Part shown: positions 12,675 through 62,872 of the stretch, piece by piece | How the letters are laid out: the number at the start of each line of letters is the position of its first letter | Numbering within the stretch: position 1 is the stretch's first letter | Assembly: GCA_023515725.1 (NCBI GenBank) | Contig: JALDTO010000098.1 | Coordinates: forward strand, 1,080,164 to 1,144,163 | Source: Amoeboaphelidium protococcarum X5 | Taxonomy: Eukaryota; Fungi; Aphelidiomycota | Direction: 5' to 3' | Length of the DNA stretch: 64,000 bases | Program-made: the position numbers and the translations under genes | Notes under the pieces: model-generated | Database searches by the model: none | Told to the model about the DNA's origin: nothing | The model's input: the letters and a program-made list of their open reading frames with translations, nothing else

Positions 12675-12788
12675 TTTCAAAAGTTTAATGATACTCATGA
12701 TTAGATTCTATATAGACAATTCGTAAAGTTTTTCGTACCTCTTTTGACTGCAGTACTTGGCTTGTACTTTTGACTGCCTTTGAGTTTT

Positions 12789-12937
12789 TGATATGAAGTG
12801 GCACTTAATGGACTGTTGATTGGCGACCGTTTACTTTAGAGCGCGTGTACAAGCTTTCTAGTTGATAATGTGACCATAAACACCAACTTGCCATCATGCT
12901 CGCCAATCAACAGTCCATTAAGTGCCACTTCATATCA
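12789..12937. repeat. Perfect 38-bp inverted repeat with 73-bp spacer
   Basis: TGATATGAAGTGGCACTTAATGGACTGTTGATTGGCGA (12789-12826) is the exact reverse complement of 12900-12937. Confidence 0.95.
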
Positions 12938-13084
12938 CACGCGAGTTTCAACCAGCGAATCACATAACGTTCTCAGCCGTGGGAATTCAGGAGCCGTAAA
13001 CTCGTGCTTTTTATTTTTTTTATGGACTGAATATTTTTGATCTTCGTCATTCCAATAAGAAATAACAAAATATCATAATTGGAA

Positions 13085-15493
13085 ATGGCTTTAATTACGT
13101 AGACTTTCATTGTGGCATTTCTAATTTCTCAATTTTTGGGATGGACAGCTGCAATGAAGAATCCTTTCGCCAAATAGTAAGCGAAGAGCCCCAGCCACGG
13201 AGATATTTACTCTCTGTACCAGACTGCGATGCCTTCAGATGAAGACATGCATGTCAATGACGACACTGTGTAATACGCTCCGCTCGGTTCGCTGATTGAC
13301 GCTTAGAATGTGCAGCAGGTGCCACCAGGTTTCAAGATTGCAATGATCGCAGACACTGGTCTTAATGTCTACTCCGAGAGATTATGGCTGAAACTAAGAT
13401 CTGAAAAGGTGGATCTGGTGCTCCATCCGGGCGATTTCGCGTACAGATTCGACGAAGCGCGAAATTTCGCCAGTAAGATCAATCAAATATTTCCACCTGA
13501 TTAGATTCCATATGTAACGACTACGGGCGATCATGACATTAGAGAATTTTTGGTTTATCGTAATCTGCTGGTGAAGAGGGATTTGCAAAACAAGGAGCTG
13601 TAATGTGAAGGCAAGTGGGGATATTTCCATGTTTGTACGTACCGCGGCATTGTTATGGTTGGCGCTGGTCTGGCGCTGAAGGATATTCCCAAGAAGGTTG
13701 GCGAGAATTATGCTGCTCTATTCCACTAGCAATTGAAGCGATTTGAGAAATGGTAGTGGAAATTCTGCTTTTGGCACAGAAATGCAAATAGATTTCAGGT
13801 TGGTGGTAAGAAAGATGGTATAAGCGAGATATTCTATGATGTTTGCAAGGAGCACGGCGCCACTATAGTTACTGGTCATCAGCATACCTACTCGAGAACT
13901 CTTCCGCTGACTGATTTTAAGAAAGGCATTGTATCTAAAGGTGTCACCATGAATCCTCTTAATCGCTATGGGCAAATTACTCGCGTGTTCCCCGGGTAAT
14001 CATTCTGTATTGTGACTGGTCTTAGTGGAGCTCAGCCTCGTAATTGGATAGCGCCCAGAATCAAAGATGATTTCTGGGTCTCTGTGCTGGCAAAGTAGAA
14101 TTTTTAGTCTGTCGGTGGACTGACATGCACTCTCAATGATGACCGATAGTTTGATTGTGATTATAGAGATCTGGAGAATGTTCTCGTGGATAAGTTTACT
14201 ATAGTGTCTGAAAATTCCGCTGCCCTTCCTGGATACTCTCAGCAAGATCCAAATGATGTTCCCCGTGTGTCCAGAGTGAAGCACACATACTGGTGGAGTC
14301 AGGCCACTGGTATATTTGCTAGTAGCTATCATTATCTACTCAAAATGATAATGGCTTTGAGATTTCGTACTTATGCCATTCAGCCGTAACAGAATTTACA
14401 GGAAGAGAATCTGGACATGTCTGTGAAGATTGATGCGGCTTATCGCTCCTATTTGATTGAAGCTAATTTCAGACTATTATCCTCTGGAGATTAGATTGAG
14501 GGCTCTCACGGTAACAAAATTCATAAGTTACAGGTGGATATACCTGGATTCACTGTGCCAGAGAATGTGGATTTCTTTAGATTGCGTCTGTAGTTGACTG
14601 GTCCTGATGCAAGGACGATAGAAAAGATGGATCAATTAATGTCTAGCAGACGAACGTGGCCAAAGTCGGTTCACTTTGTATTCAGAAATCATAATATCCA
14701 GCGGTCAGCGTCTCCATTGAGCATGATCAAGGAAAAGTCGACTGCATATTTTAGATCTCTGAGCATCAACAATCCCGCGAGAGATGGTTATCGCAGAGTG
14801 GTGAGTGACTCGGATTTCTCTTTCGATGGTGATCAAGATTAGGCGGCTCCTCTTATGGGGAATTAACGTCCAAAGCAAGGCTTCAGTACTAGGATGAAGA
14901 ATGCAAAGACTTAGTTGCGTCAAATGTTTGATAAAACATAGTCCAAGTTCAAGTAGATGTTTACTCCTAAATAGAGATAGTAGAAGCCAAAGTTACAGCG
15001 CGTCGATAGTAACAGCAAGAGATCATCTTGGAGTCTTGATTACGATCATGTAAAGGAGGCATCCACCAAAGTTGTCTGGGTGTCCAAAAACTTGGTGCAG
15101 CTGTCAAAGGAGTGTTTGAATGAGAGGAGACAGCAGCGGCGCAAGACTTTATCCACGGATAGACGAGGTGATACTGAGATTGGCTTTTATAGAAGTGATG
15201 AGGCGGAACCGTGCTCCATCTATCTGTATACTGATGAAGTTGGCAAACTGATGCTCGAGTCTGCAACCAGCAGTTATACTAGATTGGCACCGCGATGGAT
15301 TGTTGAGTTCTAATACACTGACTACTTTACGCCTAAGAACAACAACAACAAGAATAAAAATAATAAAAAGCAAGATACTACTGAAGAAGCATAAGGATTG
15401 AGTAAACGTAGATCATTTTTGGATTTGGAAGCTCTCCGTTGGTCTCTCAAGAAGGATCCAGATTAGTCATCTCACAGCAAGAAGGAGTTATGA
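13085..15493 (+). CDS. Secreted or ER-luminal calcineurin-like metallophosphoesterase with C-terminal extension (~802 aa)
   Basis: Signal peptide MALITQTFIVAFLISQFLGWTAA; motifs ADTG, HPGDFAY, GDHD, WH, GHQHTYSR; ends KKEL-TGA. Confidence 0.8.
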
Positions 15494-20124: not shown

Positions 20125-22068
20125 ATGATTAGTACAGTAGCTTGGGTTGGTAAAGGTGTCGCGAATGAGAGAGCGGTAAAGTAGGAGCTAGATGATGAAG
20201 AGTATCAGAGAATATGTGAATTGACCAATATGAATCTGGAAGATGCCAAGCAGTAGATGGAGCAGTCCATGACTTAGATGGCAGATGAGGATGGAGATGA
20301 CAATACGGCTTAAGATTATGATGCATCTATGGGTAGCGATGGTGCTGAGTAGAGTGATAGCGATATCAGTGTACGCGACACCGACGATATTGAAGAGCTG
20401 TTCGACATGAAGAATTATGATCAGGAAGTGACAACCGTGGAGGATCAGCTATTCAATCCAATGGGCCAGGATCTTAAAGTATTTCGCCCGGATGGTGAAG
20501 ATCCTTATATTAAGCTGGATGATCAGATGGCTGATAGCGATGAAGAGGAGGACCTGGTTATTGATTAGAAGGAGGATAATCTGATTCTGGTCGGCAAGAC
20601 TGAAGATGATATATCAGTGTTGGAGTGTTATGTGTATAATGCTCACAGCGACTCTCTCTATGTCCATCACGATCTCATGCTTCCCTCATTTCCACTCTGT
20701 ATTGAGCCTGTCAATTTTGCTGGTATAAAAAGTTAAGCTGGCTAAGAGAATGCACCTGGTATTACCAATAATGGTAGAAACTATTGCGCCGTGGGAACTT
20801 TTAACTCTGAAGTTGAGATTTGGGATTTGAATGTTATCGATGCCATGTATCCTTAGATGATACTCGGTGGATAATAGTAGTCGAAGTAGGTTGCTGAGTA
20901 GTTGAGCAAGTCCAAGAAGAAGAATAGTAAAAGTGCTAAATCTAAGTTGAGTACTAAGAACAGCGGATAGATCAGTGGACATTCTGATGCTGTATTGTCC
21001 ATATCGTGGAATAGGTATGCTCAGAATTTCCTAGTTACTGGATCTGCTGATGGTCGTATCATCTTATGGAATCTAGCTAGTGATGAAAACAATGCTGGTG
21101 GTAAAGTATTAAATGTTTATGATCGCGTTCATGGCGGTGATAAAGTGTCGTGTGTCAAATTCAAAGATGGTTGGTACATGAAGTAGGCTGGTGATGATAA
21201 AAATAACCAATAGCATTTATCTGACGCGTCATTGCTCCTCACCGGTGGATATGATGGTCGTGTATGCCTTCTAGATGTTCAGAAGCCGGTTGATATTTGC
21301 CTACTCTGTTCTTACGATCTCAAGTCTGATGTAGAAAGTATAAGTTGGGATCCTTTCTATCCGTAAAGATTTGTGGTTGGTTGTGATAATGGTAGAATCT
21401 ATGTCTTTGACATTGATATGAAGAGTGGAGGTGGGTACATGTTTGGTGCACCAAGTCTCACTATTGATGCTCACTCTAGTTCTATAACTAGTGTGGACTT
21501 TAACTAACATATACCAGGTATGATTCTTACTTCATCTGCCGTGAGCAGTGCAGATGGTGCACTCAAGATTTGGGATATCGGAGTATGTATTTAGGAGAAT
21601 AATGGTGGTGATTCTGAAGCCTAGTACGTGTCTGGTAAAAAGAAAACAGCGTACCTGGCCAATAGAGATACCGGTGCTGGTAAGGTGTTGAGTGCCAGCT
21701 TCTGTCCTGATAATCCATTCATGATTGCCGTGGGTGGATCTAGCGGATAACTGTCTCTTTGGAATGTCAGTGAAAGTAAAGCGGTGAGGGAACACTTCCA
21801 TGGCCGCCGACTACCATCCTATTTGAGCCGTGATTAAAAAGATGTTTAAGTGGTGAATATGAACAATGAGTATAGCGTTACTATGAGCAGCGGAAATGAG
21901 GAGAATGACGAAAAGTAGAAAGAGTCGGAGTTATCATCATAGTAGTAGTAGTAGTAAACTTAAAGTGACGATGACGAAGAAGACGATGGTTATGACGATG
22001 AAGCTGAGTTGGAAGAGACTATAATGGAGATGAAAGGCGTCGTTGTCGGTGATAGGTAAAAGGAGTGA
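20125..22068 (+). CDS. PWP1: PWP1, periodic tryptophan protein 1 (WD40)
   Basis: MISTVAWVGKG, DPYIKL, DNLILVGKTEDDISVLECYVY, LYVHHDLMLPSFPLCIE, NYCAVGTF, GHSDAVLSISWN. Confidence 0.95.
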
Positions 22069-22115
22069 GATAAATATATATTTAGAGCGAGTATCTCGTG
22101 TAATCACAGCATAGT

Positions 22116-24422
22116 TCACGCATTTTACTTTTTCCATTGCTTTGCTTTAGACAGCAGTGCTGCTAGGCCAGTACCGCCAGAGGCCGGCGGCCTTTCATGA
22201 TCTTCTTTAGCAACTTCTGCGACCACGACAGTGTCCTCAGGAAACTCATAATCATAATACTCCAACATTGTATAGTCAGCGTCATCATCTGGATTCTAGC
22301 GCTTACGTTTCTTGACTTGCTGAGGCATATTCTACTAAAGTGTGCTGCGAATATCTTCCACTCTAGTACTGGCATCCAGTTCATCATAAAACTGCTGCTC
22401 AAAGTCTAGCCAAGTGATGTAAAGCAATCTCCTCTCTTCGCTTTGACCGCTCTATTTAAACGACTCGCAGCCCCTCTTGAACGTGGACCTTGCATTCTAG
22501 TAAGCCTTCTCTTATGGTGTAAGATCTGTCTCGTTTTATTGATCATGAGCAAGCAAGCACTAATGTTCAAACTCTGCCAAAGATACCCAAACTTTGGGAT
22601 GACTACTTCTCTATAATAATCTCTCGTATAATGCACGAACTCTGTCCACACTCTTTAAATCATCTGGCGTGATATTGTCAACTTCAAAATCAATATAAGC
22701 CTTCCACAACACCTCGGGCATGTCCAAGTACTCTTATCTAATCCCCAGTTCAAATATACCACGAGCGCGTTCAGTCTCACCCAGTAAAGATTCAAGCTCA
22801 GCATACTTGCACCAACCATAGACATTAGCAGCATCGTGCTAAATAAACTTCTCGTACAATATTCTACAGCGGGAGAACTCACGCAGACACAGCTCAAGTT
22901 CAATGTATCCTTTAAACAACTTCGGTGTCGGATGAACACCCAGAGCTTTGCCCAACAGTTTCCTCGCATCAGCCAAAGTTCCATGACGGATTTCAAACTT
23001 GGCAGCCAGTAGCCAGATTTTGGCAAAAGTAAAGTGTTAATGTGGAATAACTCTAAGACACGTTTAATATACCTATCTCGCACGGTCAAATTCTTTTACC
23101 ATGATCTCTTCAAAAATCGCATACTTGATCCACAAATATATGTAACGTCTCCACTATCTCTTATCATCAGAAGATGGTGGTACTTGGGCAATTGCACGCT
23201 CATACACCTCTCTACATCTATCGACAACTTGCTTGAATTACTTATCGTTCACCATCGAGGACTACTTCATGTGAGACGTGGTAGATTAAGCACCTCGAGA
23301 CAAAGACTGTAGAATTCCCTCTTCCAAGTTGATATAATCAAACCACACGTCATAGTCTTGTTATTACAACATGGCACTAGAACTAGTCGATAAAACTTTA
23401 ATCCACTGCTCATACTCTTGACGCTTCTTCAGAATAATAACAGATTCTATATCCTCCTTGTTACCATGCTACTATTCAAATAGAACATAGTCAGATTACA
23501 ACAACTACAAAGACTTTTTACAATCATTCAGTAATTAGAGAGCTTTTTCATCAAACCGCTGAGCCAACAACTATTCCACCTCAGCAATTCTACGCTACAT
23601 ATCCTCAATACCATACTTGAAGATGAATCTGGCACGTTCAATCTCTTTAAGACTAGATTCAAATTTAGCAAATTAAGAGCACAACTTTACCGAATCAGAG
23701 CTATAATACTCGTCAAATAGCAGTTCCATTGCATTAGTATACACTGCTCTAGCATTACCAACCTACTTACTTTCCATCTCCCACTGCGCCCACTAGATCC
23801 AGCACTCAACCACACAATGTACTCTACACATATCGCCATAAATTTACCTAATCTTGGCACTATTCTTCAATCTACTCTCAAAACTAATGTACAGATTATA
23901 AGCATTAATAGATGGCTCCCACTTCATCCAGCGATCGAATACCAGACGCGCACTGCTCACATTACCCAGAGACTCTTCCATAAACGCATACTTGTACCAG
24001 AAGTCATCCACTCGAGGCAGAAGAGCAATGACGCGTTCATAAAGATTTCTAGCGTGATTAATAAATCCATTCCTGGTCTCGATCAGAATATACTCTTTCC
24101 AGAACTGGACTGCATGTGGGTGAACACTAAGCGCCCTCTCCATCACGGAGCGACAACGACCAAATTCACGCTGAGACTCTTCAAATCTAGCATACTTGAG
24201 CCAATTCTAAATAGACTGAGGATTAAGACGGACGGCATTCTCATGATACTTTCTCTATTTAAGCTGGAAATTGCGCAGTTCCTCAACATCCAGAATGTCA
24301 GTCTACTTGGTGATTTTCTTCACAGGTCTCAAGAACTTGGACTTATCAACAGCCTCCCTCAGAATTTACTCTGCCGTAATCTGCAACGGAGCAATACTCT
24401 TATCTTTCACTGTAAAAGACAT
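22116..24422 (-). CDS. CLF1: Crooked neck/CLF1, HAT-repeat splicing factor
   Basis: [85 protein letters not shown]. Confidence 0.95.
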
Positions 24423-24528
24423 AAAATTTCTTTTAGTACAATTGCTTTATAATTGAATATAAAAAATAGAATAGTTATGATGTTATGGTCTTCTGCTGAA
24501 TCGAAGTGGTAAGATGAAGTTTAGTAAA

Positions 24529-24646
24529 AGAGAGAGAGAGAGAGAGAGACAAAGAGAGAAAAGACGTGACGAGTTTCTCTCTCAGGCGAAAGAGTAAGGA
24601 GAGCGCGTTAATAGGGAGAGGGAGAGAGATGGAGAGAGCGACGCGT
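24529..24646. promoter_or_regulatory. (GA)n tract plus CGCG boxes in the CLF1/PHS1 divergent promoter
   Basis: (GA)n 24529-24549, GCGCGT near 24603, ACGCGT 24641-24646. Confidence 0.5.
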
Positions 24647-28992: not shown

Positions 28993-30927
28993 TCACTGAC
29001 AAGACTGTGGAAGGCCGATTAGCAAATTATCAAAGTCAGATCCCAGACCGCTCCATCTGCGCATAGATCTCACGATTGCTGGATCACGATGTACTCTTGT
29101 ATAGACACCTTCTACCCACGCTCCTTATTCGTTCTTCACGGTATATCCGCATACATCATTTCTGTGGGCTTTGGAATAAGGAACGCTCTTGCATTGCTGG
29201 TTTGATGGACCCGTGTAGCGACTACAATCACTATAACCATCAGGGTATCCTTGAGCTCCATTTTGCATAAATGTGTATCCACTCATCACCATCTTGATTT
29301 TCCAGTCGGCATCGTTGCGATCAAATAACTACTGCTCAAAATGTCTATGCTTCTCTACATCCTTGTCCTTCACCAAGACTGAGCCTTTATCAGCCATGTC
29401 ACGAGATGACGAACCACCATTCTACTGATCATGGTCGTCATTCTGGATGACAAAGCGAGAAGCAGGCAATATCCAACTACCGCATATTGGATGCTCCTTA
29501 GGATAGTCTGAAGACCAAATCTTGACTTGCTCAATTTCAGCATCCGATAGTCCATTTGCCTTCATTTGATCATCTAGATACTAGTAGAAATTGTAGTTAT
29601 TATACTCACAAGCAAGCAGATTTCTCTCTCCGCCCATAATAACTTCCAGCCAGGTGATGAAATCCTATGGAAAGTTGCCACCAAGTTTCTACTTAGTTTT
29701 ACCTAAGATGGCAGCCAAATCATCCGGACGTGTATGCTTTGCAGCATCAATTCGGAAACCTGAAAATCCGATACTTATCAGGTTGGTCAAATAAGTGGCA
29801 ATTCTGTCCCGCACATACTCCTTCTCCGTATTCAAATCGGTCAATCCAACTAGCCAGCCATAGTTCAAAGAGAATCCAGAGGCCCAGTCATTGAGCGTAC
29901 GTTCGCAATGGAAGTCTTCGGCATGATATGGAACAGCAGGGAACTCCAAGGCTGGTCTCATCCCAGTAAATGGATTGTTCTCATAAGTCCATGAATGCGT
30001 AAAGTATGGAGAGTCGGCACTAGAGTTCTTGGCTCCCCAATACACGCAACTTCCACCAGCCTGATTTCTATGAGTATACACATCATTTCCACCACCAGTC
30101 ATATGATTGATCACGGCATCGGCATACACTCTGACGCCAGCTCGGCGACATCTGACAATCATATCACGCAACTGAGCCTGACTTCCCAGTCTTGAATGAA
30201 GACGATAGGAGACTGGCTGGTAAGCAAAGTACCATGGATTCAATTCACCATTTTGTAGATAGTAATCGGAGATGACATGCTCTTGAGGAGGATAGATCTT
30301 GACACCCATGTATCCAGCTTTGCCTAGCATAGATTCACATTCCAGAGCGACATCTTCATATGGCCATCCAAACAGCTCAACAATAGCACCTCTCTACCCA
30401 TTTTCTGTATGCGGCGAGTGAACAGAAGGATTCTACCAGGCGAAGTATATTGGATCCAACAGCAGAGTTGCATTACTGTCCGTTCTGACAGAGATGGTCA
30501 GTCCATCTTCCGACAAGGACTAAGACTCACTACTGAATTTTCTCGTTGGATTTTAGTACCACGGATTATCGCCAAACTTGAACTCCAGCTTCACATCAGC
30601 ATTTCTGGTAAATGTGCGAACAGTAACTTTAGCTTCGCTCCTATCCGGATTATACTAAACATCAGCGTAGCCTTGCAAGTCGCCATAATCTTGCCAGCTA
30701 GGTGATGCGTATTGAGGACTCGAGCGCGGAGGAGTCTGCCACATGCGACCGCTCACCTGCGATTTGTCATATGAAGTCTAATCACCACGACAGGAATCGA
30801 GACCTTGAAAGTTACTGCAGCTCTCTGCAGCACTGAATACATCATTGTCTTGAAAGCGGATGTAACTGGAACTTACCAAAGTGAACGTCGCAGCAGAAGC
30901 AATAACAAAGAGCGGAGATAGCTTCAT
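28993..30927 (-). CDS. Secreted GH13 alpha-amylase with N-terminal extra domain (~644 aa)
   Basis: Signal peptide; GAIVELFGWPY, YQPVSY, YADAVINHM, GFRIDAAKH (nucleophile), WLEV (acid/base), NDDHD; C-terminal YTRVHRD. Confidence 0.92.
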
Positions 30928-31020
30928 ATTAAACGACTAGATTATCTGCTACAATTTCAAAAACAGAGACTTAAGAAGCGCAGAGTATAAGTAAATGCAG
31001 ATAAGCTGAAAGTTGTTATC

Positions 31021-31251
31021 GCGGATCGCGTTTGAAATGAGTCCTCGATTGCTCAAAACGATCGCGCAGTTATCTCTTTCAGTCAGTCAGCAGTGAGTCG
31101 ACAGTTTCAACGCCGCCTGCTATGGAGTTAGATGCGGGCTCACTTCTCGTGTGAAGTTTCTTATGCGGCGGAGTGAGCCTTGCCTGCACTCTTTACTAGA
31201 CGGCCTCCGTTTCACTCAGCTGTTTCTCGTATAACGTTTCAGAGGAAAACA
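31021..31251 (+). ncRNA. Putative structured RNA or structured 5' leader; long G.U-rich hairpin at 31088-31222
   Basis: Hand folding: GGCTCACTTC/GGAGTGAGCC core, extended by TCGTGTGA/TTATGCGG, GGAGT/ACTCT, GCCGCCTG/TAGACGGC, AGTGAG/TTCACT and CAGC/GCTG. Many pairs are G.U, which work only on the + strand. Confidence 0.45.
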
Positions 31252-31352: not shown

Positions 31353-34300
31353 ATGAGTAAGGTATTGGGTAAATTGAGTGCTGATGAAAAAGGGAGAAGA
31401 ACGAGTGTAGTAAGTGTCGATGTCAAGGCTACTCCGTCCTCTTTGGCAAAGACTACTGGTGTCCTATCAAAAACTGAGTCTGCTATCATTGGCTAGGCTA
31501 ATGCGGTTCTACAAGAAAGTATCTATTTAACTGAGACTGCTGTTTCTCAGCATAAACTTTCTCTCAGATCTGCTGCCAGGCTGGATCCGAGTGTAGACCT
31601 TGATAGATTGCAGCAGCTTACCGTCGAAACAGGGCCGACAAAAGCAGAACTGAAGGCTTAGAAACTGAGAGAAATTAAGGATCGTGTTTTGCTTGAACAT
31701 GGTGTTGTAAAGATATTTGATAGAGGTCTTGATTGTAATGAGTCTATTAAGGAGCTGAAGTTGCTGTTCTCAAATTTCAAAAATGTTCAAAAAATGCCTA
31801 TGCTATCTGTGATTCTTCTAAAGGCGAAGGAATGGTTGTCTAATGAATCGCAGGCGCAAATTGTTCAAGAGGTGTTTTCGTTTATTGAATATGTCTATGT
31901 GAGATTTCAATGTGATATTGATCCCCTAAGTAATGTGTCTGTTCTGGGGTTTGCCTGTCAATTGCTGTCTGGTAATAAATCTGCTTCTGAAGACGCTGTC
32001 ATTGATCTGCTGGAAACTATTATGCCATCGCTATGCAAGCAGTCTTCATAAGATTCTCTACTGCTGAAGAACGTTATTAATATCCTTGTTGACACTCGTT
32101 ATCGTCTGAGAAATTCGAGTACTGTACTGTTCAAGATTTAGTCACTCTTAGCCATGCTGCAGGATATTGGCGTGTAAAATGTATCATCTAGTAAGAGATC
32201 GTCTCATGTGGATCAGATTTAGATTTCTGCATCATTTGACAATTGTATGCCGCAATTACTTAAAAGTTCTAATCCTGTTTGCAGATATGGGATGATAAAG
32301 TTTTTAAGTCAAGACATATCTGTGAATAGCGCTATTGAGATGTCGTTTGATTCTAAAAGGTAAATTGATTTAACTATCTTACTCTAGGACATATGCTTGT
32401 TACTGTCCGATAAACAAGTGAAGACACAGTATGCATTAGCTGCTAATATTCTACGCTTCCCGCCTTAGACTAATTTAGGTCGGATGATTCTAACTATTGT
32501 CTCTAACAAGGTGTCTATTCAGTCTATAGCCTCTCTGTTGCCAGAGCTCAAGTAGGCTCTATGTAGTGTGATTTTGAATCTATTTCTTTTTGGAGATTAC
32601 TTTCAGGCAGGTAGAGAGGGAGCGTCAGATCCAGATGTTTTGAATGACAACCTGTCTCCTCCTATTAAAGAAGATACCAAGTCTGATAAGAACACAGCTC
32701 CCACCATTGACCGCAAGATTCATTCTTTGATGCCTTAAGTGGACGCTACCACCTTGTGTGATATTCTCAATTTTGCACAAGATTTTATGGCTGATAGCTT
32801 AGTCGCCGCCATTATGGCTGATGAGTTTTGTAAGTTTTGCATCACTGAGAGCTCGTGTTATAAAGTCACATTTGCGTTTAAGCGTTTGATTTTGGATGGA
32901 GAGATTCCTTCTCGATAGTTTATTGATGCCACTCTGCCCACTTACTTGCAGAAGATGGCTGATAACGGCATCAATGCCATGTCAAATTAAGAGTTGGAAC
33001 ACATCAAGTACCTACTGTATGCCATTCACATCAATTTTGAATAGTCGCTCTATTATCCCTTCATTAATCTTTTGAGTGCGTCTGATTATCTTGAAGTGGC
33101 GGGTAATGTCAAACTTGTCAGTTTCCTTGATGAAGTTCTTGGTGAAGTGAAGCTATGGTTTGGATTAGACGGTTGGTTTTTAGAGGGAAGTTAGGTAAGT
33201 ATGAAGTCTGACACATCTGAAGCTGGCTCCAAGTCAAAGGCAGACAAGAGCTTGACGGTCCCTAAAATTCCGCAATTGCTACGTGCCAAGGCTAAGGAGT
33301 AATATGTGGAGCTGATGAGTCTAATACTGCTTGGTGCTGAGGCTGATTGCAAAACCTCATCGAATATCACTTTGGGGAGATTTGCTCTGTATTTGGAATT
33401 GATATCCGTCATGCGTCAAATCAGATTGGCTCTCAAGTAGAAGGGTATTATTGCTGAAGTTAGAGAAGCTATAAAGTCTACTTTAATGGATATTGAATTG
33501 AGAGTCTATGCTTATTTGAAGATAGTTGAAACTTCTGGGTGTGAACTTTGTCCAGATTTGAAGTGCATGTTGTCAAAGTTTTTAGTGGAGGTAAGTCAAA
33601 TTAAAGACCATTATAGTCGCTCCTAGTGGATTCCATTTATTGTAAAGTGGGTACTGATGCATTTTTAAGGACTGCATAAGCTCAGCTTCAATAGATTTGA
33701 GAATGTGGATGGCGACGCGCAGAATTTGTTAAATCTTGCACTCTAGTTGCATGGAGCTTTTGTCCGTTACATGATGAAATACCAAAAAACTTCAGACATC
33801 TCCGCGCTGTAGACTCGAATTGATATTCTGTTTCCCTATCCCCCCGATGTGGCTGTTCCATTCACATTTATCGATACTGATCTGCTGTAGGTCTTGACTA
33901 CACTGTTGGCCTCTCAGTTGTTATTTATTGAAACGCCAGAGATTGTTGTCTTAATGCCAGAGGTCTGGCAAATGTTGCCTAATGCAACTGGAGATTTACT
34001 GAATAAACTTGTTTTGCTCTTTATGTATTTTGCGGATAATGCTCCTGCTCAAGTAAAGCAGATGGTTTACTCTCAGCTGTATCACAATAATCCTGAGATT
34101 AGAAAGAATGCGCTTGCATGTGTTGGACGTCTGTTCAACCATAGAGACTATATTTAGTATCAGAGTATCAACGATAAGAATTTTATGAGAATTTCTTCGA
34201 AGCGAACTGTCAAGTCTGGTATTCGTAACATTGCTGATACATTTAAGGTGCCAACATTAAATTTGCCGTTTGTGATTTCAGAGCACGGAGAAGATGGTAG

Positions 34301-36671
34301 TTTACTGGTTAACGAATCCGAATGGGTGTCTCTGTTTTAGAGGGCTATTAGTCAACGAAATGCGCAGTCATTCATCGACTTTAAGAAGGAGAAAGATCTG
34401 AGTGCAATGCATCACACTGTGAGAGAATGGGTAAAGTTGAACTAGGAATCGATGAATGATGATAAAGAGAAGAGAATTGAGACAAAGCTTACCATGTAGC
34501 CTACCACTGCTGTTGCTGACCGTGGAAAGCTGGGCTCCATGCGCTAGAAAAGATTTGGAGCTCTGTTTCCGATGGCCCTGAATTTAATCAGTTTTGCTAT
34601 CGTTGATTTGACGTTGGATCACGATGTTGTTGTGTAATAGTCTGCTTATGAGTTTTTGCACAAAATGATCAGAGATGACCCTGGTACGTTCTTGCGTATG
34701 TATTTCAGTGAAATGATCGCGTCTCCTCCATAAAAGTAGCTGGAGTTGTTGTCTCGTTTAAAGCGCATTGTATTTCATAGAAAGAAGCTGTCTTATGGTT
34801 TTGCGTACTTGCTTCTAAACTTTTGCATTGGATATTGCCAGTATCTAATTTAGAAGCATCGTGTCACCCATTATGAAGTTATTGCCGGTCTGTTACCTAT
34901 TATGTCTCATATTTACACCTCCGTGAAAGGACTGACTTTTGCCGATTTGAAAAGAATGAAACTTGATCTGGTGTTCACTCCATCCATGGACTTTTGGTAT
35001 GGTGAGAAATAGATTGAGTTTTATTCGGCAGAGTTTGAGTAGAAATTACCTAAAGATAAGATTACCAATTTGTCCCTGTGCGCACATCGTCTGCAGACTT
35101 TAAGATTGGCTCAGTACATGCTTACGATCAACATTTTGAATAAGTATCCATCTGAGTCTGATCGCGTACATAACTACTTCTTAGCCGAGTTCAATGGCAA
35201 GTAATCTTTTGGTTAGACTATCACGAGATCTTAGTCTAAGCAGGCAAATCTTGATCAGTTTGCGTTCCAATAGTCGGTCAAGGATGTTTCTTGGATCATT
35301 AGAACAGTTTTATTTGAGAATGTCCCCGTCAAATTGCCTCATGATTCTACACAGAGATTGACTGCTAATATTAATCGTAAAGTGTGGTTGAATTTACTTG
35401 AGGTTTTGTATTTGGATATCGATCAGGCAATTGTTGGTAGCAAGTACTTGACTTAGCTGATGAGTCATGTAAGCGCACTGTTGTTTATGTATTCGTATGA
35501 TTACGAGCTGGTTAAAAATTGTCTCAACTTTTACGCACTGGTAGTGACCAAGTTTGTTGGTAAGTTCGCCAAAAATGGTTACAACACATTAATTAAAGAA
35601 CTGTTCTTATACTGTGTGCTCAAACACGCTCATGCACGTAATGATGGCTCTGAGATTCAGAAAGACATTTACTTGACTTGGAACACCATGTTTGCCATCC
35701 ATAGAGAGTCATTTGTGATGCAATGCATTAACGCTCTTGTCCCGATGATCAATGATTGGAAAGAGATTTATCAAGTCACAAAGAATAATTTGATCTCTAC
35801 TTTTAATTGGCTGTTCTCTTCACTGAATGCGCGCAATGGAAATATTCTTGTTGAAGGATTTGAGGAGTCTCTCTCCAGCACGTCTTAGTACTATGCGTTT
35901 GATTCTGAGGAGATGATTAAATTACTGATGACATTGATTTCCAAAAATTTGGATTCTGCTCGCTCCTATGAGCTGTTGTAATTTATACAGTCGTATTCTC
36001 TTGCCACTGCTTAGGAGCAAGGCCAATAGAATCTGCTATCTCATTTCACGTTCGCCTACGTCACGATGTTGGAAGTGTTTGCAAAATCTGGTGGAGCTGA
36101 TAGTTTTCTGATCGGAGTCACAAAGTAGTTGTTGAAAACCTCTTTTGATAATGATAACACTGCTATTATTTCTTATATTATATGCCGAGTGAAATTGATT
36201 GAGAGTTTTGGCCTATTTCTGCTGTAATTGAGTCCGATTCAAATGGCCCTAGTGAAAACTTACGTCTCGTCCAAATGTATTAATGACGCTGTGAAAATTG
36301 CATTTGGTGTATGTAGAGTGGCCTATCTCAACAAGTACACTGGATTGAATGATTCTTTCATCGCCACTCTTGTCGATGGTGTTAGTCAGGTGTGTGGGGT
36401 CCTGGCTCCTATCCAGTCTCGTTATGTAATTGAGGTGATTCTTCAAAAGTCCTTCCTGTTGATTCGCGACTATGACAAGCTGTTGGACTTTAAAACCTTG
36501 TGGAAATCGCTGGTCTCAATGGTTCTTGATGCGCGTGATTCTAAACAGTACTGGCCAATGTTTAAGTAGAAGAACATCAAGCCTCTGTTTGATATTTATC
36601 TTGACTCCAAAAGTGTGCCGGAGCAAGTACTCGAGATTTTTCGTGGGTTTGAACAGGATTATTAGATTTGA
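31353..36671 (+). CDS. UNC80: UNC80-like HEAT/ARM protein (NALCN channel-complex subunit homologue), ~1772 aa
   Basis: Single frame. Ordered blocks PEVWQML...LYHNNPEIRKNAL, FKVPTLNLPF, LFPMAL...MIRDDPGTFLR, VKGLTFADLK, FAKNGYNTLI...MFAIHRESFVMQ match my recollection of the UNC80 C-terminal region. Confidence 0.75.
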
Positions 36672-36734: not shown

Positions 36735-37132
36735 ATGTTGGATTTTGGTTTACCGAGTATATATCGCCCAAAGATTTAATGTTTTGATGTTTTATCATCA
36801 TCATCAGCATTGGCAATGTAATGTCAGGTTACTACCTGCCTAAAGCTTTCCGGAACTGCCTTTGTAAACTTTTGGTCGCGTGTGAATCAATCGATTCTCT
36901 CCGTTCTCTCAGCCGTTGCTCTGTCTTTCTTACTCTCTTTTTCGTTACCTGATCCATCTGAAGTACAAAACTGTAGTTTAAATTTAACGTTTGTATTATA
37001 TTATACTTCTAGAAGGCCTGGTTTGATTGGATTTATTCTTTAGAGACTCTCTTGTAATTGAAAGAATTTAGATCTCAATTTTATTAAAGCAAACACATCT
37101 TATCTGTTGAATTTTTGTTGAAAGGGAAGGGA

Positions 37133-38398
37133 ATGGTGACGCAGTAATCAATACTGCATGATGATCAAGTAAAGAATCTATTAGCAGGAGCTCTATCAGG
37201 ATGTATAACCGCTATTGTGACATGTCCACTCGATGTGCTCAAGACTCGATTGCAGAATTAGGGAGCTCTGAGGGACACTCAATACAGTGGAATTATACCA
37301 TCGCTGCGACTCATCTGGCGAGAAGAGGGTGTCAGAGGACTGTATAGAGGATTGAGTCCAACGATTCTTGGATATCTGCCAACGTGGACTGTGTACTTTT
37401 GGTCTTATGACAGGTACAAGTTGTATATTGCCGAGTATATGTAAGCTTCTGCTCAAGACTCGCGAGTGCACATACTCGGCGCAATACTCGCAGGTACCAC
37501 CTCAAACATTGTAACTAATCCGCTCTGGTTAGTTAAGACTCGTATGATGACATTTCATCAGTATAAGCAGTTGAATGGTGACTCGTAATACTATAGAAAC
37601 ACGTTCGATGCTTTTCGACAGATTTATGCCACAGATGGGCTATTGGGATTCTACCGCGGACTTGTACCATCTCTGTTTGGCGTGGCTCATGTTGCTGTCC
37701 AATTTCCTTTGTATGAGCGCCTGAAAGCTGATAGATTCGCTGATCGTTTAATGTACACTGATCGCGCGGTATCCTTGATGAATGATCCCTCCCAAGTGTA
37801 GATATTCTTCTCATCCACCATATCGAAGGCAATCGCTTCCATGACCACATATCCTCATGAAGTTCTCCGCACTCGCCTACAATCTTCAAATTAGAATTGT
37901 CAACACAGTCAGCATGTGAGACTACTACCTCTAATGAAGATGATTTATATGCAGGACGGCGTGTCTGGGTTCTATCGCGGAATGGGCACCAATTTAGTGC
38001 GGACTGTACCTGCTAGTGCTGTAACTCTATTGACTTATGAATACATCATGAAGTTTCTTCGGCAATACTAAAATACGTAACAATAGGAATAACAATAATA
38101 ATAAAAGTAGATTTAAAGAGTATACATATTCATTTATTTCAAGTGTCATAACGCTATTCTAACAATACTATCCGTAATCAATGAGTCAAATACCAACCAA
38201 TTGAAGTTATTGCTACAACTTGGACTAGTCAAGAGACAATTTGCGAGTAATCTAATCGTAATTGTTAATCCATTGTTGTAGGAGAAGGGACACGCAACGA
38301 GACAATTCCATCTCGAGGCCAACATTACCATCACATCGAACAAGATTAGGTGCAAATACAATAGACAGATTGGATGCATTCATCTTGGTCTGCTCTGA
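37133..38398 (+). CDS. Mitochondrial carrier, NAD+/folate transporter type (NDT1/YIA6/SLC25A32-like); 3' end uncertain
   Basis: Three carrier repeats: [33 protein letters not shown]; [13 protein letters not shown]. Homology ends near 38065; the first in-frame TGA is at 38396-38398. Confidence 0.85.
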
Positions 38399-45508: not shown

Positions 45509-45861
45509 GTCTTTTCTATATATTACTTTCACTATAGATGATTTTGATTTTTCTAATAATAATAACTAGTTTAAGAGAAACTTTGACTATGAGAATTTGA
45601 AACTTTGATCAAATAATAATTAATGATTAGCGATCCTGCTTAAAAATAGCTCAATCGCTCTAATGATGACTCAAAACTGCTAAATCACTATTGGAATCAA
45701 GCAAGGATCAAACTAGAATGAAACGAGTCTCCACTTGCAGATATGTATCACGACATTATGCTATTTAAATATCGCATATTTCAGTTTCGACGTTGTTCTT
45801 CATGAAGATAAATCGTTTAAGAATGGTTCATTTGTTTCGCAATAATTTAATGGCTGTTTCA

Positions 45862-45897
45862 CTCATTCATTCAATCAATCATTCAATCAATCAATCA
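45862..45897. repeat. (TCAT/TCAA)n tetranucleotide microsatellite in a divergent intergenic region
   Basis: ctcattcattcaatcaatcattcaatcaatcaatc. Confidence 0.7.
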
Positions 45898-46029
45898 TAA
45901 CTCCGCTCCAAGAGTGTTCTGTTTCGACTTGGATATTCTTTCCTCTTCCGTAGACATTTGCGAGAGTCTATTACTTTAACATACACAGCTAGTATTGGAA
46001 GCGCCGAATTTTTTATATAGCATTATATA

Positions 46030-49000
46030 ATGGACCTGAATAAGCTTTTTGGACCTCTAGTTAACTAGGATGGAGATGAATTGAGTGAAGAATAGATTAC
46101 GAGTTTAATTAGTTCTGTGGACAGAACGCAGGTGGTCAAGAGAACTGTTATTGCGTGGCGTCTCTGTGCATACATTGAGAAGAATCCTAATGCTTACTTT
46201 TCTGTTCTGAATAAAGTTCAGTCAGACTACCTGATTTAATCTACCATCTTACATTACAATGGCTAGCAGGCTACTAGTTTTGTCGAAGGCTTGGTACAGG
46301 ATCTGTGTAAGGTTTGGAAGACTTTATCGTCAAGTGACAGCTGCGGTCGCAATGAGTGTCTTAAAGCGATGTGTCTCCTGATGCCTCATTGTGTGAAATT
46401 ATCATCCACAGCTGTCCGCGAATTGAATAGAATAGTCAAGCAGGTGTCATCCATCTCTCATGATTGTGAGTGGAAAGCTTAATTTCTTCAGTTATTGTGT
46501 TCAATCTCTAGTTAAGGTGCTCTGTCTATTAGAGTGTTCGCATCTCTAGTGGACGATGATAATTACATAAAGTGCATTATTCGGTTATTTGAAGGTGTAT
46601 CTGGTATTACTCGCAGTCATATATGTTATCTGCTGAAGAATCTGCTGTCTAATTGTGGACAAAAGTTGATGTAGATGCGTTTGAATAAGATTTCATCTCT
46701 TTAGTTTAATGATGAGCTTACACAATCCTTGATTAAGAGTATGTAATTGGATATATTTTCTGTTCAGTAATAGTAGTAGCTCTTCAATGGCGGTGGTGGT
46801 AGCAGTAAGTTTATGAAAGTTTTCCTGATTCTTGCTGCCTACTTGACTAAATTCAGTGACAACAGAGACGTTATCTTGGGAATTTTTGAGGCATTTCATA
46901 TAATCTTGCGATAGAATGGTGTAATTAGTGCTGAAAGTTGGATGTAGTATTTCAAATTCTTTATGAGTTTATTTATTGATTCCAGATTTGATGTAAATTG
47001 TGAATTGTAATTGATGAAGCGTGGACTTTGTAGCTGGATAGTATAAGAAGTGTTGATTAAGAGCTATTCTGGTAGCTTTAAAAGTTAGATTGTTGGCTTG
47101 ATATTTTAAACTTATCTTACTCCAATCTGCCAGCAGCTGAAGTAGCCATCTGCTGAAGGTGGAAAAGTATCGTATGAAGTAGTGTCGTTAATGATATTCT
47201 GTATGGACAATCTTTCATCGTTCCTATCTTTCGGGGCACAATTACAGGATGGTGAGTAATTGCAATGTCTGACGAAAGTTTTATTGGAACAGAAATTAAC
47301 ATTTGACAGTTTAACGCGGTAAAGAAATAATATCAGTTTGCTGGTGTCATTCGCTTGGCTTTGTAAAGCTTATGTAAAGACTTAGCCTTCTGGATGTATT
47401 AATATTCTGAAATATCTCATCGGATTCATGGAATAAGTTGGAAGTTCAGTCACGATGGCTTCCATTGATAGTTATGTGGCATGTGCGGTTATAGTTAGTT
47501 ATGCCATATCTGATCTTAATCCGGTACATTTTACGTTCGATTGGTTGCAAAGTTTGGTTATGATTGCATTTTAAAGTGTAAAAGTGGGCCTTAAAACTGC
47601 AGAAACTTTTCTCCTTAAAGAGAATGCTTTTAAACTGGAGGAGAAGCAAAAGGCAGTATATCTCAAAAAGGCTTGTAGTTTAACTTTTGTCGGATTCTTG
47701 CTTCTATCTGCATTTGTGAATTTGAATTCAGAGTTTGTTAGCTATCATCTACCTCAGATTTTCGCCCACCTCAAGTCTCATCTGGTGAAGATTAACAAGG
47801 ATGGTCTCCCTCCCGCTTCATCTACTGATACTAATAATTTGCCATTGTCTGCAGATGGCTGGTGTTGGGCAGTTTGTTCTCGCAATGCTGCCATGTCTTT
47901 AATGTGGTGTCTCTTGAGTAAGTGTCAATCATTGCTGAATGCCGATATGTACAAGAGACTTATGTCGTGGACTTAGAATACGCTTGTGACTGCTCATAAT
48001 GTCCCGGCTTCTATTGCTCACATATTGTAGTACTCTAATTCTAGTATATAATCTTTCAACAGCTTCAGTCGCCATTTCGTATCCACTGACAGTGCGTTAA
48101 TCAAGTAGTCCGGGCCTGCGTAATTTAATCTATAGTCGCTCAATGTTGTCGAAAATCCATTTCTTATATCATAGATTAGTGGATGCGCTGTCTAACTGAA
48201 AAGTAGAATTTATCAAGTGTATTTTGAATTGCACCCGCTTGTGTTCACTAAAGCATATGTGGCTCGAATGGATAAAGGACAGCTTTAATCTCACTAGTAG
48301 TCCATCTTTCAGATCATGCGATCTGTCATGGAGTTTATAACCTCAGATGTGTATCTGCTAATTCCACAAAATGCAGATTTGAATAAAGTGGTGTCATATT
48401 ATTCCGATTTGCAGAAACGAATTTGCATTCTTCATTCTACGGATGATGGTCAGGTGAAAGCTATACCGGCGTCTTAGGTGATGTGGGACTCTGAAGATTA
48501 ATCCAGTGCGTTGAGAAGAGTTATCCCGGACAATCTGTGTCAAACTTCTTTGATATTATTTTATTCATTGGGCGGTATAAGCGAAAACTAGTCAATCGCT
48601 AGCCAACCCATTAACGTAAGAAAGAAGAGTATTCTGGGTGGTGTTTTTGATGGTGCGGCGTCTTAGTAAGAATCTTCAAACTCCATCAATGAGGGAACAA
48701 GTCCGGCAAGCTCGTTTGGTCAATGTAATATACCTTGGTTTACGTGTGATTTATCTAACGATTTGCATGACGGATTACTGTTCAGTGCTCCTCATTCTTA
48801 GATTCGTAATAAGCCTCTCTTGCTCTCTCTGAATGTATATGCCACTGATGCTGCCATAGGAGTGTTTGCCACTCTATTCTTGGAGTAGGATGATTCCTAT
48901 AAAGAGGTTTTGCTGGATTAGATTGTCAAGACGATAAGGATTTTCAAGTAGCATGCGGCCGTGGTTTCATCGGCTAATGCAACCCAAAATGTTCCCAAGT

Positions 49001-52000
49001 TTGTATCTGGTCTTATCCAGGCCCACCTCTCAAAAGGCATCATCAATTCTATAGTTGCCCTTGAACGATCGCATAGCATGCACCGCGTGGAAAATGTGAA
49101 TTATAGCGCCAAAGCCCTTCAACTTCTGGAAGAATTGTATTTTGAATCTCTGCAATCTCCCATCGGATAAATTAAGTTGGCCAGTTCTGCTTTATCTGCA
49201 TCTATTGCCAGGAATGTTGCTGCAAGTGTAAAAGATGGTACTTATAGTAATCAGCTTTTCGACAATGTGTTGGAAAAAGCTATTTAGTCGGCTTAGAATG
49301 CATAATTAAGAGCTGGAGCTATTTATGGAGCGTCCTGTGTTTTGATAGAGACTCAGCAGTTGAACTCTAGTGCGAATTAATGCAGAAAATTGATTGATGT
49401 TCTGATTCAACTCTCAAAAGATCAGAATCAACTGGTGCATTAATGGAGTCTTATGTCGTTATCCAGGCTTTTTGAAGCATGTGGAATGTAGTTGTTCTCA
49501 GTGGTTGGTCGAAAGTATTTGTGCGATATTATTGCTTAACTGTGCGTTTTTGTGTTCGATTCTCCGGTACATGTACCATGTTGGGGCAGTGAGTAACAGT
49601 AATAATCCAATAGTAATAACATGCCCATATCTTAACTTTCTTAGTCAGATATCTGTCCCTATAATTCTGTATTGCGTATTGTACGCTTCATTATGAATGC
49701 AATCGGCCCTGAGCTCTCTGGTGGATCTGGTAAAGAGTTTGGTGTGTTTTCTTATCTAGTATCTTCATTCGTAGAAGATTTGCTGATTCAAAATGGAATG
49801 GCCATATGTCCTGTGTCTGAGTCAAATTTAGTACAGTCGATCGCTGTACCATTTTAGATCAGGTTCAACCTAAAGTTTATTGCTTAAAATTACTCGCTGA
49901 CTGACATGCAGCCTATTCTTTGCTCATTTCTGTGTAGTCCGAGTCCGTATGAATTTACAATGTCGGAATTGCTGAATAATGTGCACGATATGCTTCTGTA
50001 TAAACTTGCCTCTATTTTTGAACCATCTCAACTTATGTAGAAGCTCCAGCTCCTGCTTTGCGTCGCACCATAGTAAGGTGAACCTTATGAGATGTAGAAT
50101 GCTGTAGTTAAACTACTTTGGTAATAGTACCTGCATCAAGACGACGTTAGCGAATCATCATTCTATAGCTCTAGCTTTGTAGAGATGCTATTGTACTTTG
50201 TTGGTTAATTCTAATTGGTTGATTCTTCTAATGATTTCCCGGCTTCTTAGTCTTAAAGTCTCAGTGTGTAACGGTGCACTGAGATTATATAGCGCATTTG
50301 TCGTAATGACTACGCCAATGGTAAATATAGCACATGGCTGACTTTGTTTAAAGATCTTACGACTAGAGTCCAATCGCTGCAATAGTAGCACGACGATAAT
50401 GAAGAGGATATCGCGTCTACCGTTGATTCTACGCAGGAAAATCAAGCTGGTAGAGAAGATACCAGTTAAGTTAAAAATGATGGCATGGAAGAAGAAATGG
50501 ATGATTTTGATAATGAAAGATCTGATTATAACAATGGTCAAAGGGTGGATGATAAAGCATCTGATACTTAATCAGTACGTGCGAGATCTCAGTCAAGGCG
50601 GTCTAATGTAGATGAAGTTCCAGGAAGCCCCATGAAATTATAAAGTGGAAGAATACTCGGCTCTTAGTTTAATGGCGGCGGTGCAGCGTAGTAGTAATAA
50701 CTGGCAAACGGATTTTTGTCATTTGCGACTACGAAATGGATTCAGCAATGCTCAGTCTTCAGCGAGTCGTCTAAATCAAATGTTGTCCATATGCTCAAGG
50801 GTCTTCTTGGTGGAATTTAAGAATCTCTCAACAACAATAATACATCGCCTTTGCTGACTCTCCAGGTTGACTTGCTCATGGCTCGCTAGTTAGTATCGAA
50901 GCTCAAAGCTGCCAATTCTGCAGATAAGCTGGCCAGCATGACGCCGGTAGTCATGAGATTGTCCGAGTTGATTGGAATGTGTTTCCAGTTGCTTTCTGTC
51001 GCTACCACCACTCAACTTCGCTCTGCCGTCGGTGATCTACTGTGTGCTATATTTCAATTGTATGGCCCTGTAAGAGATCCCGATTTTCCAGAATCTTCAA
51101 TCTTGGAGTAGTATTAGGCTCAGATCAACTCTGGTCTAGCATAGTTCATGCCTAGTAAAGAGCATGGAGGTTAGGTGGAATTGGATACGGTGATTTCTAT
51201 TCTGAAGACTTGTTTTGTTTACTTTACATGTGGCATTGCTTCATCTGCATCATCTGTGAGTCGAATTGTAGAATTGGTAAGTGGATTGTCCAGGATGTTA
51301 AACAAGCCTGATTGTAGTTTTAGTTTGGAATTCTACAGTCTTGCTCGCCTCTAGTATGTTAAATGTATATCTAATCTTTACGCTTTGGCTGATAAGAGTT
51401 CCGTATTAACAGATATTTTGATGCAGCTCAGCTAAGCTGATGTCTATGAATTATGGCTAACAAACTTCTTTTCCGATTACATGCTCCTCCGTCATGGAAG
51501 TAACGCAATGTCTGTTGAGAGTCCAAATTCTACTTCGAGTAAGATTTAGGAATTGATGGCGACTTCAATGGATGTCTATGCCAACAATGGGCTCTCTGAT
51601 TTCTGCTACATTGATTCTACAAGACGCGCTCTTCATGAGGAATATGTTGATGCATGGCCTTAATTATCTATTGCATGTGGTCGCTTCTTGTTGAAGAATG
51701 CTGAAGTGGCCAATAATATGACATCCCTGCGTTGTATGGTTATATTTGGTCAGTGTTTTGAAGTTTCACTCTCTTATAGTAGATCGTTATGTTCCATTGA
51801 CCGATGCAAATCCGCTCTAGTGCTCCTTCAAAGTCTACTGGTATCATAATCTGCAGAAAAGCTGCTGCAATGGCTCGACACTGATATGTTTAAGGAGATG
51901 GTTGATGCCATGTACTTTAGCCTGGAGTAGGAATTATCTCCATCCAAGAAGCGGAAAGAGCCATCTGCTCAGTACATATCACCATCTCTGATCATGCTAT

Positions 52001-52326
52001 TGGCTAATTTTGTGAGATTGAAAACTGAGTACGTGTAATCTAATAACATTGTGTTCCAGATCTTGATATCATTCGTGTACAACACATGGTAAACTTATAT
52101 GAAGTGTGACATTGATCAATGTGATTTGAATATGCTCAAGCCATGCCTCGACTTGCTTGATCGATTGTGGACCATATCATTGTAGCATTAGTCGTAGGGT
52201 GATTAATGGAACAATGATATCAGACTAACTGTACTTTACTTACTGACATCATGCCAAGAATATGGTCTAACCATTGATGATTCTTGCAATGCAACTTGCC
52301 TAAGATTATTAAAGTCAATTAGTTGA
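46030..52326 (+). CDS. LAA1: HEATR5/LAA1, AP-1 accessory HEAT-repeat protein (~2098 aa)
   Basis: Long helical frame; VSYHLPQI, LSKDQNQLVHQWSL, LSELIGMCF and DPDFPESSILEQYQAQINSGL (both EQYQ Gln are TAG). Confidence 0.85.
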
Positions 52327-56700: not shown

Positions 56701-56948
56701 GAAGTCTTCACAATCTCGCCCATCACCTGGTCTTGGGAGAACTACACACTCTGGGGCACCACTTCATACGGACTCTCAGCCTGCTTCTACTCCACGTCAA
56801 CGGCATAGGCCCTGTTACGGGTACAGAACCCACTCTGACTACACTTTTTAAAATCGTGCTCCTTCACTGCAAACACGTGATGAAGAGTTGATATTATTAT
56901 CAGAATATTTGCCAACCAAACACCACCACTATAGTAAGGGTGTCTCAT
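53742..56948 (-). CDS. GANAB: Glucosidase II alpha subunit (GH31)
   Basis: Signal peptide, [56 protein letters not shown]. Confidence 0.96.
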
Positions 56949-56983
56949 TTCTGACGCAAATGGCTCTAATCTTTGTTAGAGAA

Positions 56984-59028: not shown

Positions 59029-62872
<3,844 letters not shown>

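Follow-up and report, generated by a model that had tools for sequence, protein, structure and literature searches.

Locus and reading frame

The stretch analysed here comprises 64,000 nucleotides (nt) of the genome of the aphelid Amoeboaphelidium protococcarum X5, a parasite of algae related to fungi (contig JALDTO010000098.1, positions 1,080,164 to 1,144,163 of the forward strand) and is called the window, in whose coordinates all positions are given unless a contig or another record is named. It contains a gene for a homologue of UNC80, the large scaffold protein of the NALCN/Cch1 ion-channel complex. The gene and the features recognised within it are listed below, with protein positions given in amino acids (aa) and scores in bits.

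31353..36671, + strand: coding sequence of the UNC80 homologue; 1772 aa, single exon, TAA and TAG read as Gln, TGA stop
31761..35831, + strand: colinear region, aa 137-1493; a profile built from 23 UNC80s of fungi and animals matches it at 282 bits (245-1548 of its 2344 positions)
33891..34154, + strand: stop-free piece with a weak colinear match to Pfam PF19424 positions 515-581 (13.2 bits, below the cut-off of 22.7) and a HEAT repeat; a hint only
34560..34955, + strand (C98:1114723-1115118 in genome G000): Pfam UNC80_C (PF20262) positions 20-154; 40.1 bits, E 9.8e-10, above the cut-off
35370..35978, + strand: UNC80_C positions 338-545; 21.1 bits, E 4.1e-4, colinear with the first segment
35457..35885, + strand: longest stop-free piece, aa 1369-1511 (143 aa), the query of the unbiased protein search; 14.7 bits to UNC80_C on its own
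35700..35723, + strand: motif H-R-E-S-F-V-M-Q, aa 1450-1457; H, F and Q invariant in 22 of 22 aligned UNC80s, aligning to mammalian helix alpha55

An earlier note on this DNA, made from its letters, had proposed that the gene opens under translation table 6, and under that table it is one frame of 1773 codons with 35 TAG and 12 TAA codons in frame and a lone TGA at the end. Open reading frames (ORFs) delimited by TGA alone tile the entire window on both strands, and therefore TAA and TAG (together TAR) are sense codons in A. protococcarum X5. Several observations fit their reading as glutamine: four of the six TAR codons that changed between the two genomic copies of the gene became CAA or CAG, glutamine occurs in the homologue alignment at 9.6% under TAR codons compared with a background of 3.75% and with 10.4% under CAA and CAG, and UAR=Gln is the reported code of the species (PMC5304391).

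Assignment to the UNC80 family

The Pfam models used were UNC80_C (cut-off 22.1 bits), the central-region model PF19424 and UNC80_N (PF15778), and the genome-wide profile searches read through stops and covered the 23.6-megabase genome. UNC80_C was found above its cut-off at this locus, as the earlier note had anticipated of the Pfam UNC80 families, and this part of its expectation held for UNC80_C alone. On 20 stop-free pieces taken separately, Pfam gave two weak UNC80 hints only. In the unbiased search, the 143-aa piece was compared with 1.84 billion representative proteins and obtained nine matches, eight of which carry UNC80_C, all at profile positions 330-560; proteins of Rhizopus delemar and Mycotypha africana are among them. 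The closest of these matches is only 31% identical, and the aphelid UNC80 itself is therefore absent from that library, in agreement with the suggestion that annotation under the standard code would miss the gene. A word search from the R. delemar UNC80 gathered 116 relatives, including named animal unc-80, which span Mucoromycota, Glomeromycota, Mortierella, Basidiobolus, Agaricomycotina, Tremellomycetes (including C. neoformans CKF44_01613) and animals.

The table-6 translation was used for local comparisons with HMMER, MAFFT and IQ-TREE. Pairwise, it scored 284 bits to the environmental protein P0004 (aa 95-1554) and 250 bits to a second environmental protein, P0001 (aa 862-1472), followed by the UNC80s of Basidiobolus (122 bits), Mortierella (112 bits), R. 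delemar (97 bits) and Cryptococcus neoformans (38 bits). A word search with P0004 found nothing beyond P0004 itself. The 23-member profile that matched aa 137-1493 was built without the aphelid or P0004 sequence, and 20 shuffled sequences and the reversed sequence, run as controls, gave no match. A profile of the conserved central region (A2), run over the whole genome, had two matches in all, at this locus (146 bits, E 6e-42) and at the twin on contig C249. The aphelid protein retains 12 of the 14 invariant and 20 of the 28 nearly invariant residues of the family. The animal UNC80 motif blocks named in the earlier note are also present: FP...IVDL, IRDDPgtFLR, LLNFciGY and VKGLtFaDLK align to lizard UNC80 1836-1971, and F..NGY and HRESFVMQ align to 2214-2265. 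In a sequence search of the PDB, single stop-free pieces returned no UNC80; the 143-aa piece matched nothing, and the match of a 52-aa piece was a chance match to a His-tag region.

A generic HEAT/ARM-repeat protein could resemble UNC80 through its repeat composition and not by descent, and single pieces of the aphelid protein do match HEAT, Cnd1 and V-ATPase H weakly, while its pairwise scores to animal UNC80 are marginal. However, the match is colinear over ~1350 residues and keeps nearly all of the invariant residues, the shuffled controls are blank, the unbiased search gave almost exclusively UNC80_C proteins, and the UNC80 profile misses other large HEAT proteins of the genome, such as the HEATR5/Laa1 protein encoded 9 kilobases downstream. 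The data already contradict the repeat-composition explanation, which we regard as extremely improbable. At the level of sequence, these comparisons identify the aphelid gene as a member of the UNC80 family, as the earlier note had claimed for the ~1770-aa product.

Relatives and phylogenetic position

A quick maximum-likelihood analysis (LG+G4, 1958 columns) groups both aphelid copies with P0004 and P0001, at values of 96 and 95 in the Shimodaira-Hasegawa-like approximate likelihood-ratio test (SH-aLRT). Within the fungal side of the tree, this clade stands separate from Basidiomycota and from a group of Mucoromycota, Glomeromycota, Mortierella and Basidiobolus, and the animals split off at an SH-aLRT of 100. 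The aphelid stem is long, at 1.78 changes per column, and the program warned that long branches meet. P0004, the closest relative, comes from the Logan assembly SRR32590478 and is encoded in the standard code by a single exon of 2154 aa.

Two genomic copies under purifying selection

The second copy of the gene, on contig C249 (L021:1390-6723), is 93.6% identical in amino acids to the copy in the window, which lies on contig C98. Over 1788 aligned codons, the synonymous divergence (dS) is 0.32 and the nonsynonymous divergence (dN) 0.032, giving a dN/dS of 0.10. Alignable sequence of the two copies begins exactly at a common ATG, and the start codon at 31353 is supported because conservation between the copies begins there. 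All loci examined are doubled as diverged copies (C98/C249, C212/C264, C83/C243 and C192/C235); since the Mid1 and channel genes described below are also present in two diverged copies, the assembly represents two diverged genome copies.

Four public runs have contigs over the UNC80 gene, and in one of them both copies are present. The remaining three, from another sample and a second organism, have versions that are 5-10% different with the frame intact. The sole length change across the four runs is a polymorphic in-frame insertion of 3 nt, GCA or GCG, at 33239-33242. The TGA that ends the C98 copy (36669-36671) is GAA in the C249 copy (L021 about 6708-6723) and in the three other runs, in all of which the frame extends four codons (EGKL) past the C98 stop to the next TGA.

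In a genome with two diverged copies of UNC80 and of other loci, one copy might be decaying or silent, and the earlier end of the C98 copy relative to the C249 copy and the other strains could be taken in this sense. Against this, the dN/dS of 0.10 extends over the whole alignment, neither copy has an internal TGA or a frameshift, and the one indel among the four runs is in frame. We therefore consider decay very unlikely, and the substitution pattern identifies a real gene under purifying selection.

Predicted fold and candidate docking site

The fold was modelled for P0001, a protein of 764 aa that aligns to aa 862-1472 of the aphelid UNC80, from an alignment of 25 rows. The model is all-helical, with a mean predicted local distance difference test (pLDDT) score of 74 and a predicted template modelling (pTM) score of 0.72. 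Its best PDB matches are 7w7g_B, 7sx3_E, 7sx4_E and 7wji_A (E 2e-15 to 1e-8, template modelling (TM) score 0.56-0.63), all of which are entries named 'Protein unc-80 homolog'. Importins and condensin HEAT subunits come next, at E of at least 1.5e-4 and TM of at most 0.23.

The mammalian complex provides the frame for locating the conserved parts. There, the HEAT/ARM proteins UNC79 and UNC80 pair head to tail as a heterodimer with contacts at the head, the joint and the tail, in which the central domain is the largest UNC79 interface and the C-terminal heterodimerisation domain is one of three UNC79 contacts (PMC9098444). Cytoplasmic loops of NALCN tether this dimer, with UNIM-A binding UNC79 and UNIM-B and UNIM-C binding the middle domain of UNC80; of the three UNIM contacts, surface localisation depends on two, and the release of auto-inhibition on one (PMC9098444). 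In human UNC80, the counterpart of the part that the aphelid protein conserves is 1139-2386, the middle domain. The family-invariant H..F..Q motif (aa 1450-1457) falls on residues H2333-Q2340 of 7w7g chain B, in helix alpha55, and in mammals this helix gives L2339 and A2343 to the UNIM-B groove (PMC9098444). Of the nine groove positions, five stay hydrophobic both in the aphelid and in the family at large. With identities of 14-20%, the mapping is no more than suggestive, and it points to a putative UNIM-B-type docking site.

Mid1 and a four-domain channel in the same genome

The genome contains the following candidate partners.

C212:422142-422540 (- strand) and C264:958920-959327 (+ strand): Mid1 (PF12929), 67+28 bits
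C264:782590-787104, with a second copy at C212:615671-620185: four Ion_trans domains in a row, one four-domain channel per genome copy

The other Ion_trans loci of the genome are single-domain. The four-domain channel is read as two TGA-bounded ORFs (L022:2464-6861 and 6934-9087; C264:781963-788586 in genome G000), and the gene is probably split by a short intron that lies between domain III and domain IV. Its pore residues are E/D/E/E. This pore is unlike the EEKE of NALCN, and the protein is therefore more likely a Ca2+ channel than a Na+ leak channel. Compared with the PDB, domain IV scores highest with NALCN (72 bits versus 63 for CaV). An Atlas search for the channel type returned a generic Ion_trans label, and a word search with domain IV returned two fragments. 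From the presence of Mid1, and from its being the sole four-domain channel found, the channel is a candidate member of the NALCN/Cch1 clade.

A channel also accompanies UNC80 in an environmental sample: the metagenome ERZ19026022 contains P0001, the relative of UNC80, together with P0132 (L027 and L042; scaffolds 3505 and 1642), a fragment of a four-domain channel that is 57% identical to the aphelid domain IV. Both scaffolds have a GC content of 51-53% and gene calls fragmented into many short pieces, and they may come from one uncultured relative.

Neighbouring genes

The following genes lie nearest to UNC80 or downstream of it.

28993-31086, - strand: alpha-amylase; adjoins UNC80, counterpart on the P0004 contig
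36962-38398, + strand: mitochondrial carrier; adjoins UNC80, counterpart on the P0004 contig
45670-52326, + strand: HEATR5/Laa1 ORF; 2218 codons with 103 in-frame TAR codons, Laa1/Sip1/HEATR5 HEAT region at 36.9 bits

On the P0004 contig (L025), an alpha-amylase and a mitochondrial carrier likewise flank UNC80, at L025:525-1804 and 12700-14778. The amylases of the window and of the P0004 contig are 60.5% identical over 633 aa, and the UNC80s about 30%. The common flanks and the difference between these two identities imply a related organism with conserved microsynteny and a fast evolution of UNC80. Elsewhere in the window, a GH31 glycosidase gene (53742-57200, - strand) and a protein kinase C-like gene with a C2 domain, two C1 domains and a kinase domain (59018-62872, + strand) both have many in-frame TAR codons. 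TGA-free frames of more than 800 codons at 22053-24569 (+ strand) and 22116-24581 (- strand) overlap almost completely on opposite strands.

A candidate scaffold of a Cch1-Mid1-type channel

The explanation that we favour, with a probability of about 75%, is that the gene encodes the aphelid UNC80 orthologue and that this protein binds the genome's four-domain channel and Mid1. UNC80 is a soluble scaffold made of HEAT/ARM repeats; in animals and in C. neoformans it forms a head-to-tail pair with UNC79 and docks on the cytoplasmic loops of NALCN/Cch1, which carries extracellular FAM155/Mid1. By analogy, the most likely binding partner of the aphelid UNC80 is the one four-domain channel of its genome, together with Mid1. 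As a scaffold on the cytoplasmic side of a Ca2+ channel of the Cch1-Mid1 type, it would control the delivery of the channel to the surface and its gating, and hence Ca2+ entry. Physical association of all four proteins is shown in mammals and C. neoformans only (PMC9098444; bioRxiv 10.1101/2024.10.22.619677); in C. neoformans, all four (Unc79, Unc80, Cch1, Mid1) are purified together and have a calcineurin-pathway phenotype in common (bioRxiv 10.1101/2024.10.22.619677). A complex of the same kind in the aphelid, with the docking site, the UNC79 partner and the physiological role that it would entail, is proposed here. The aphelid protein has no animal N-terminal domain and its C-terminal fifth is divergent, and this short form retains, besides the central heterodimerisation domain, some of the hydrophobic groove in which the UNIM-B helix of the channel sits in mammals.

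Several results weigh against this explanation. UNC80_N had no match in the genome search, and PF19424 had no genome-level match, its best piece staying below the cut-off. Among the relatives gathered by the R. delemar word search, UNC80_N is carried by animal members alone and thus marks animal UNC80, not the wider family, and a PF19424 match is likewise missing in most of the fungal members. Pairwise similarity to animal UNC80 is weak (21-35 bits), so the link to animals rests on the profiles and the fungal intermediates. The structural match comes from the relative P0001, not from the aphelid protein itself, and the UNIM-C contact residues are not conserved in the aphelid, nor among fungi. 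The domain III pore piece of the channel is closer to CaV (52 bits) than to NALCN (31 bits). The last of these points concerns UNC79. The earlier note had looked to the same genome for the partners of UNC80, and the expectation stood for Mid1 and a four-domain channel, whereas two routes to UNC79 gave no match: the Pfam model PF14776 found no candidate over the whole genome, and when C1-domain loci were followed, a C1 domain having been noted in the Unc79 of C. neoformans (Boucher et al. 2024, bioRxiv 10.1101/2024.10.22.619677), the three that lie in large ORFs encode a RasGAP, a RhoGEF and an MRCK-like kinase. The large ORF downstream of UNC80 (45670-52326), also considered as UNC79, is HEATR5/Laa1 and unrelated to UNC79 or UNC80, and the UNC80 profile found no distant paralogue in the genome that could be UNC79.

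These results raise the alternative that the protein is a true UNC80 working without UNC79, which aphelids would have lost, either by itself on Cch1-Mid1 or as a scaffold with some other partner. The blanks of the Pfam and C1-domain routes would agree with such a loss, and so would the shape of the protein, which is much shorter than other UNC80s and whose aa 1494-1772 fall outside the family-profile match, the C-terminal heterodimerisation domain being one of the UNC79 contacts in mammals. Moreover, many fungi have Cch1-Mid1 without UNC79 and UNC80 (Senatore et al. 2025, PMC12412391). However, in every lineage surveyed, the species with UNC79 and those with UNC80 are almost the same (PMC12412391), and the best-conserved part of the aphelid protein is the central domain, the largest UNC79 interface in mammals. 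The UNC79 blanks carry little weight because animal sequences as queries cannot detect fungal UNC79 (Senatore et al. 2025, PMC12412391), which animal-based models leave unseen. We consider a UNC80 without UNC79 unlikely, and return to a UNC80 that acts with the four-domain channel and Mid1 as the preferred reading.

A further step, which we take tentatively and to which we give somewhat less than even odds, is that aphelids, a sister lineage of fungi that branches deeply, keep the full Cch1-Mid1-UNC79-UNC80 channelosome in a stripped-down form, with the 1772-aa UNC80 as a minimal scaffold core and a role in Ca2+ signalling. If so, the minimal core of UNC80 would be the central heterodimerisation domain plus a groove of the UNIM-B type, the complex would act in the Ca2+ signalling of a phagotrophic parasite that has no wall and forms zoospores, and an intact complex would exist at the very base of the fungal line, in a compact version suited to structural work.

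UNC80 outside animals and its pre-animal origin were already published in 2024-2025, and the aphelid adds one lineage. Two statements of the earlier note are thus superseded. It had held that UNC80 is not known from model Dikarya, and Unc79 and Unc80 of C. neoformans bind Cch1-Mid1 (bioRxiv 10.1101/2024.10.22.619677); it had also implied that an origin of the complex before the animal-fungal split would be new, and this had already been concluded by Senatore et al. 2025 (PMC12412391). In that survey, UNC80 and UNC79 occur in Agaricomycotina, Mucoromycota, apusomonads, malawimonads and Discoba, UNC80 also occurs in Rotosphaerida and CRuMs, and among fungi UNC79 and UNC80 are limited to Agaricomycotina and Mucoromycota, chytrids being reported to have lost all subunits (Senatore et al. 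2025, PMC12412391). Its text does not include aphelids; Paraphelidium tribonemae is in the proteome table and in no supplementary hit file (PMC12412391). What is new here is the aphelid lineage, which is unreported in Boucher 2024 and Senatore 2025, the compact and divergent form of the protein, and the small clade that it forms with two environmental relatives.

The main published conclusion on the origin of the complex is unchanged by the aphelid UNC80. Together with Mid1 and the four-domain channel, it speaks for a complex that the fungal line inherited from its common ancestor, and against a later and patchy origin. It further illustrates that alternative genetic codes hide genes from such surveys, and, as a short and fast-evolving protein, it marks the indispensable parts of UNC80.

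Comparison with known systems

The closest comparison is with fungal Unc80 (C. neoformans CNAG_01613 and the proteins of Mucoromycota and Agaricomycotina). The aphelid protein shares with most of these UNC80_C as the sole Pfam domain above cut-off, without UNC80_N. It also has in common with fungal Unc80 colinearity over the central domain, a position on the fungal side of the tree, and co-occurrence with Mid1 and a four-domain channel. It differs in being 300-1000 residues shorter (1772 aa versus 2050-2800), in its identity of 16-20% and very long branch, in its separate clade with the environmental P0004 and P0001, and in its code, in which TAR is glutamine.

Animal UNC80 (human 7SX3 chain E; mouse 7W7G chain B) and the aphelid protein have in common the central heterodimerisation domain, the H..F..Q motif on alpha55 and hydrophobic residues of the UNIM-B groove, and the predicted fold of P0001, the nearest stop-free relative, specifically matches UNC80 chains. 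In contrast, the aphelid protein is about half as long (animals about 3250 aa) at 14-16% identity, lacks UNC80_N and does not conserve the UNIM-C contact residues, and its likely partner channel differs from that of the animal NALCN complex in its E/D/E/E pore.

With the importin-beta family and HEATR5/Laa1, the likeness is that of an all-helical solenoid architecture. There is no sequence-profile match to these proteins, the UNC80 profile misses the HEATR5 gene, and the structural match of the P0001 model to importins is far weaker than its match to UNC80 chains.

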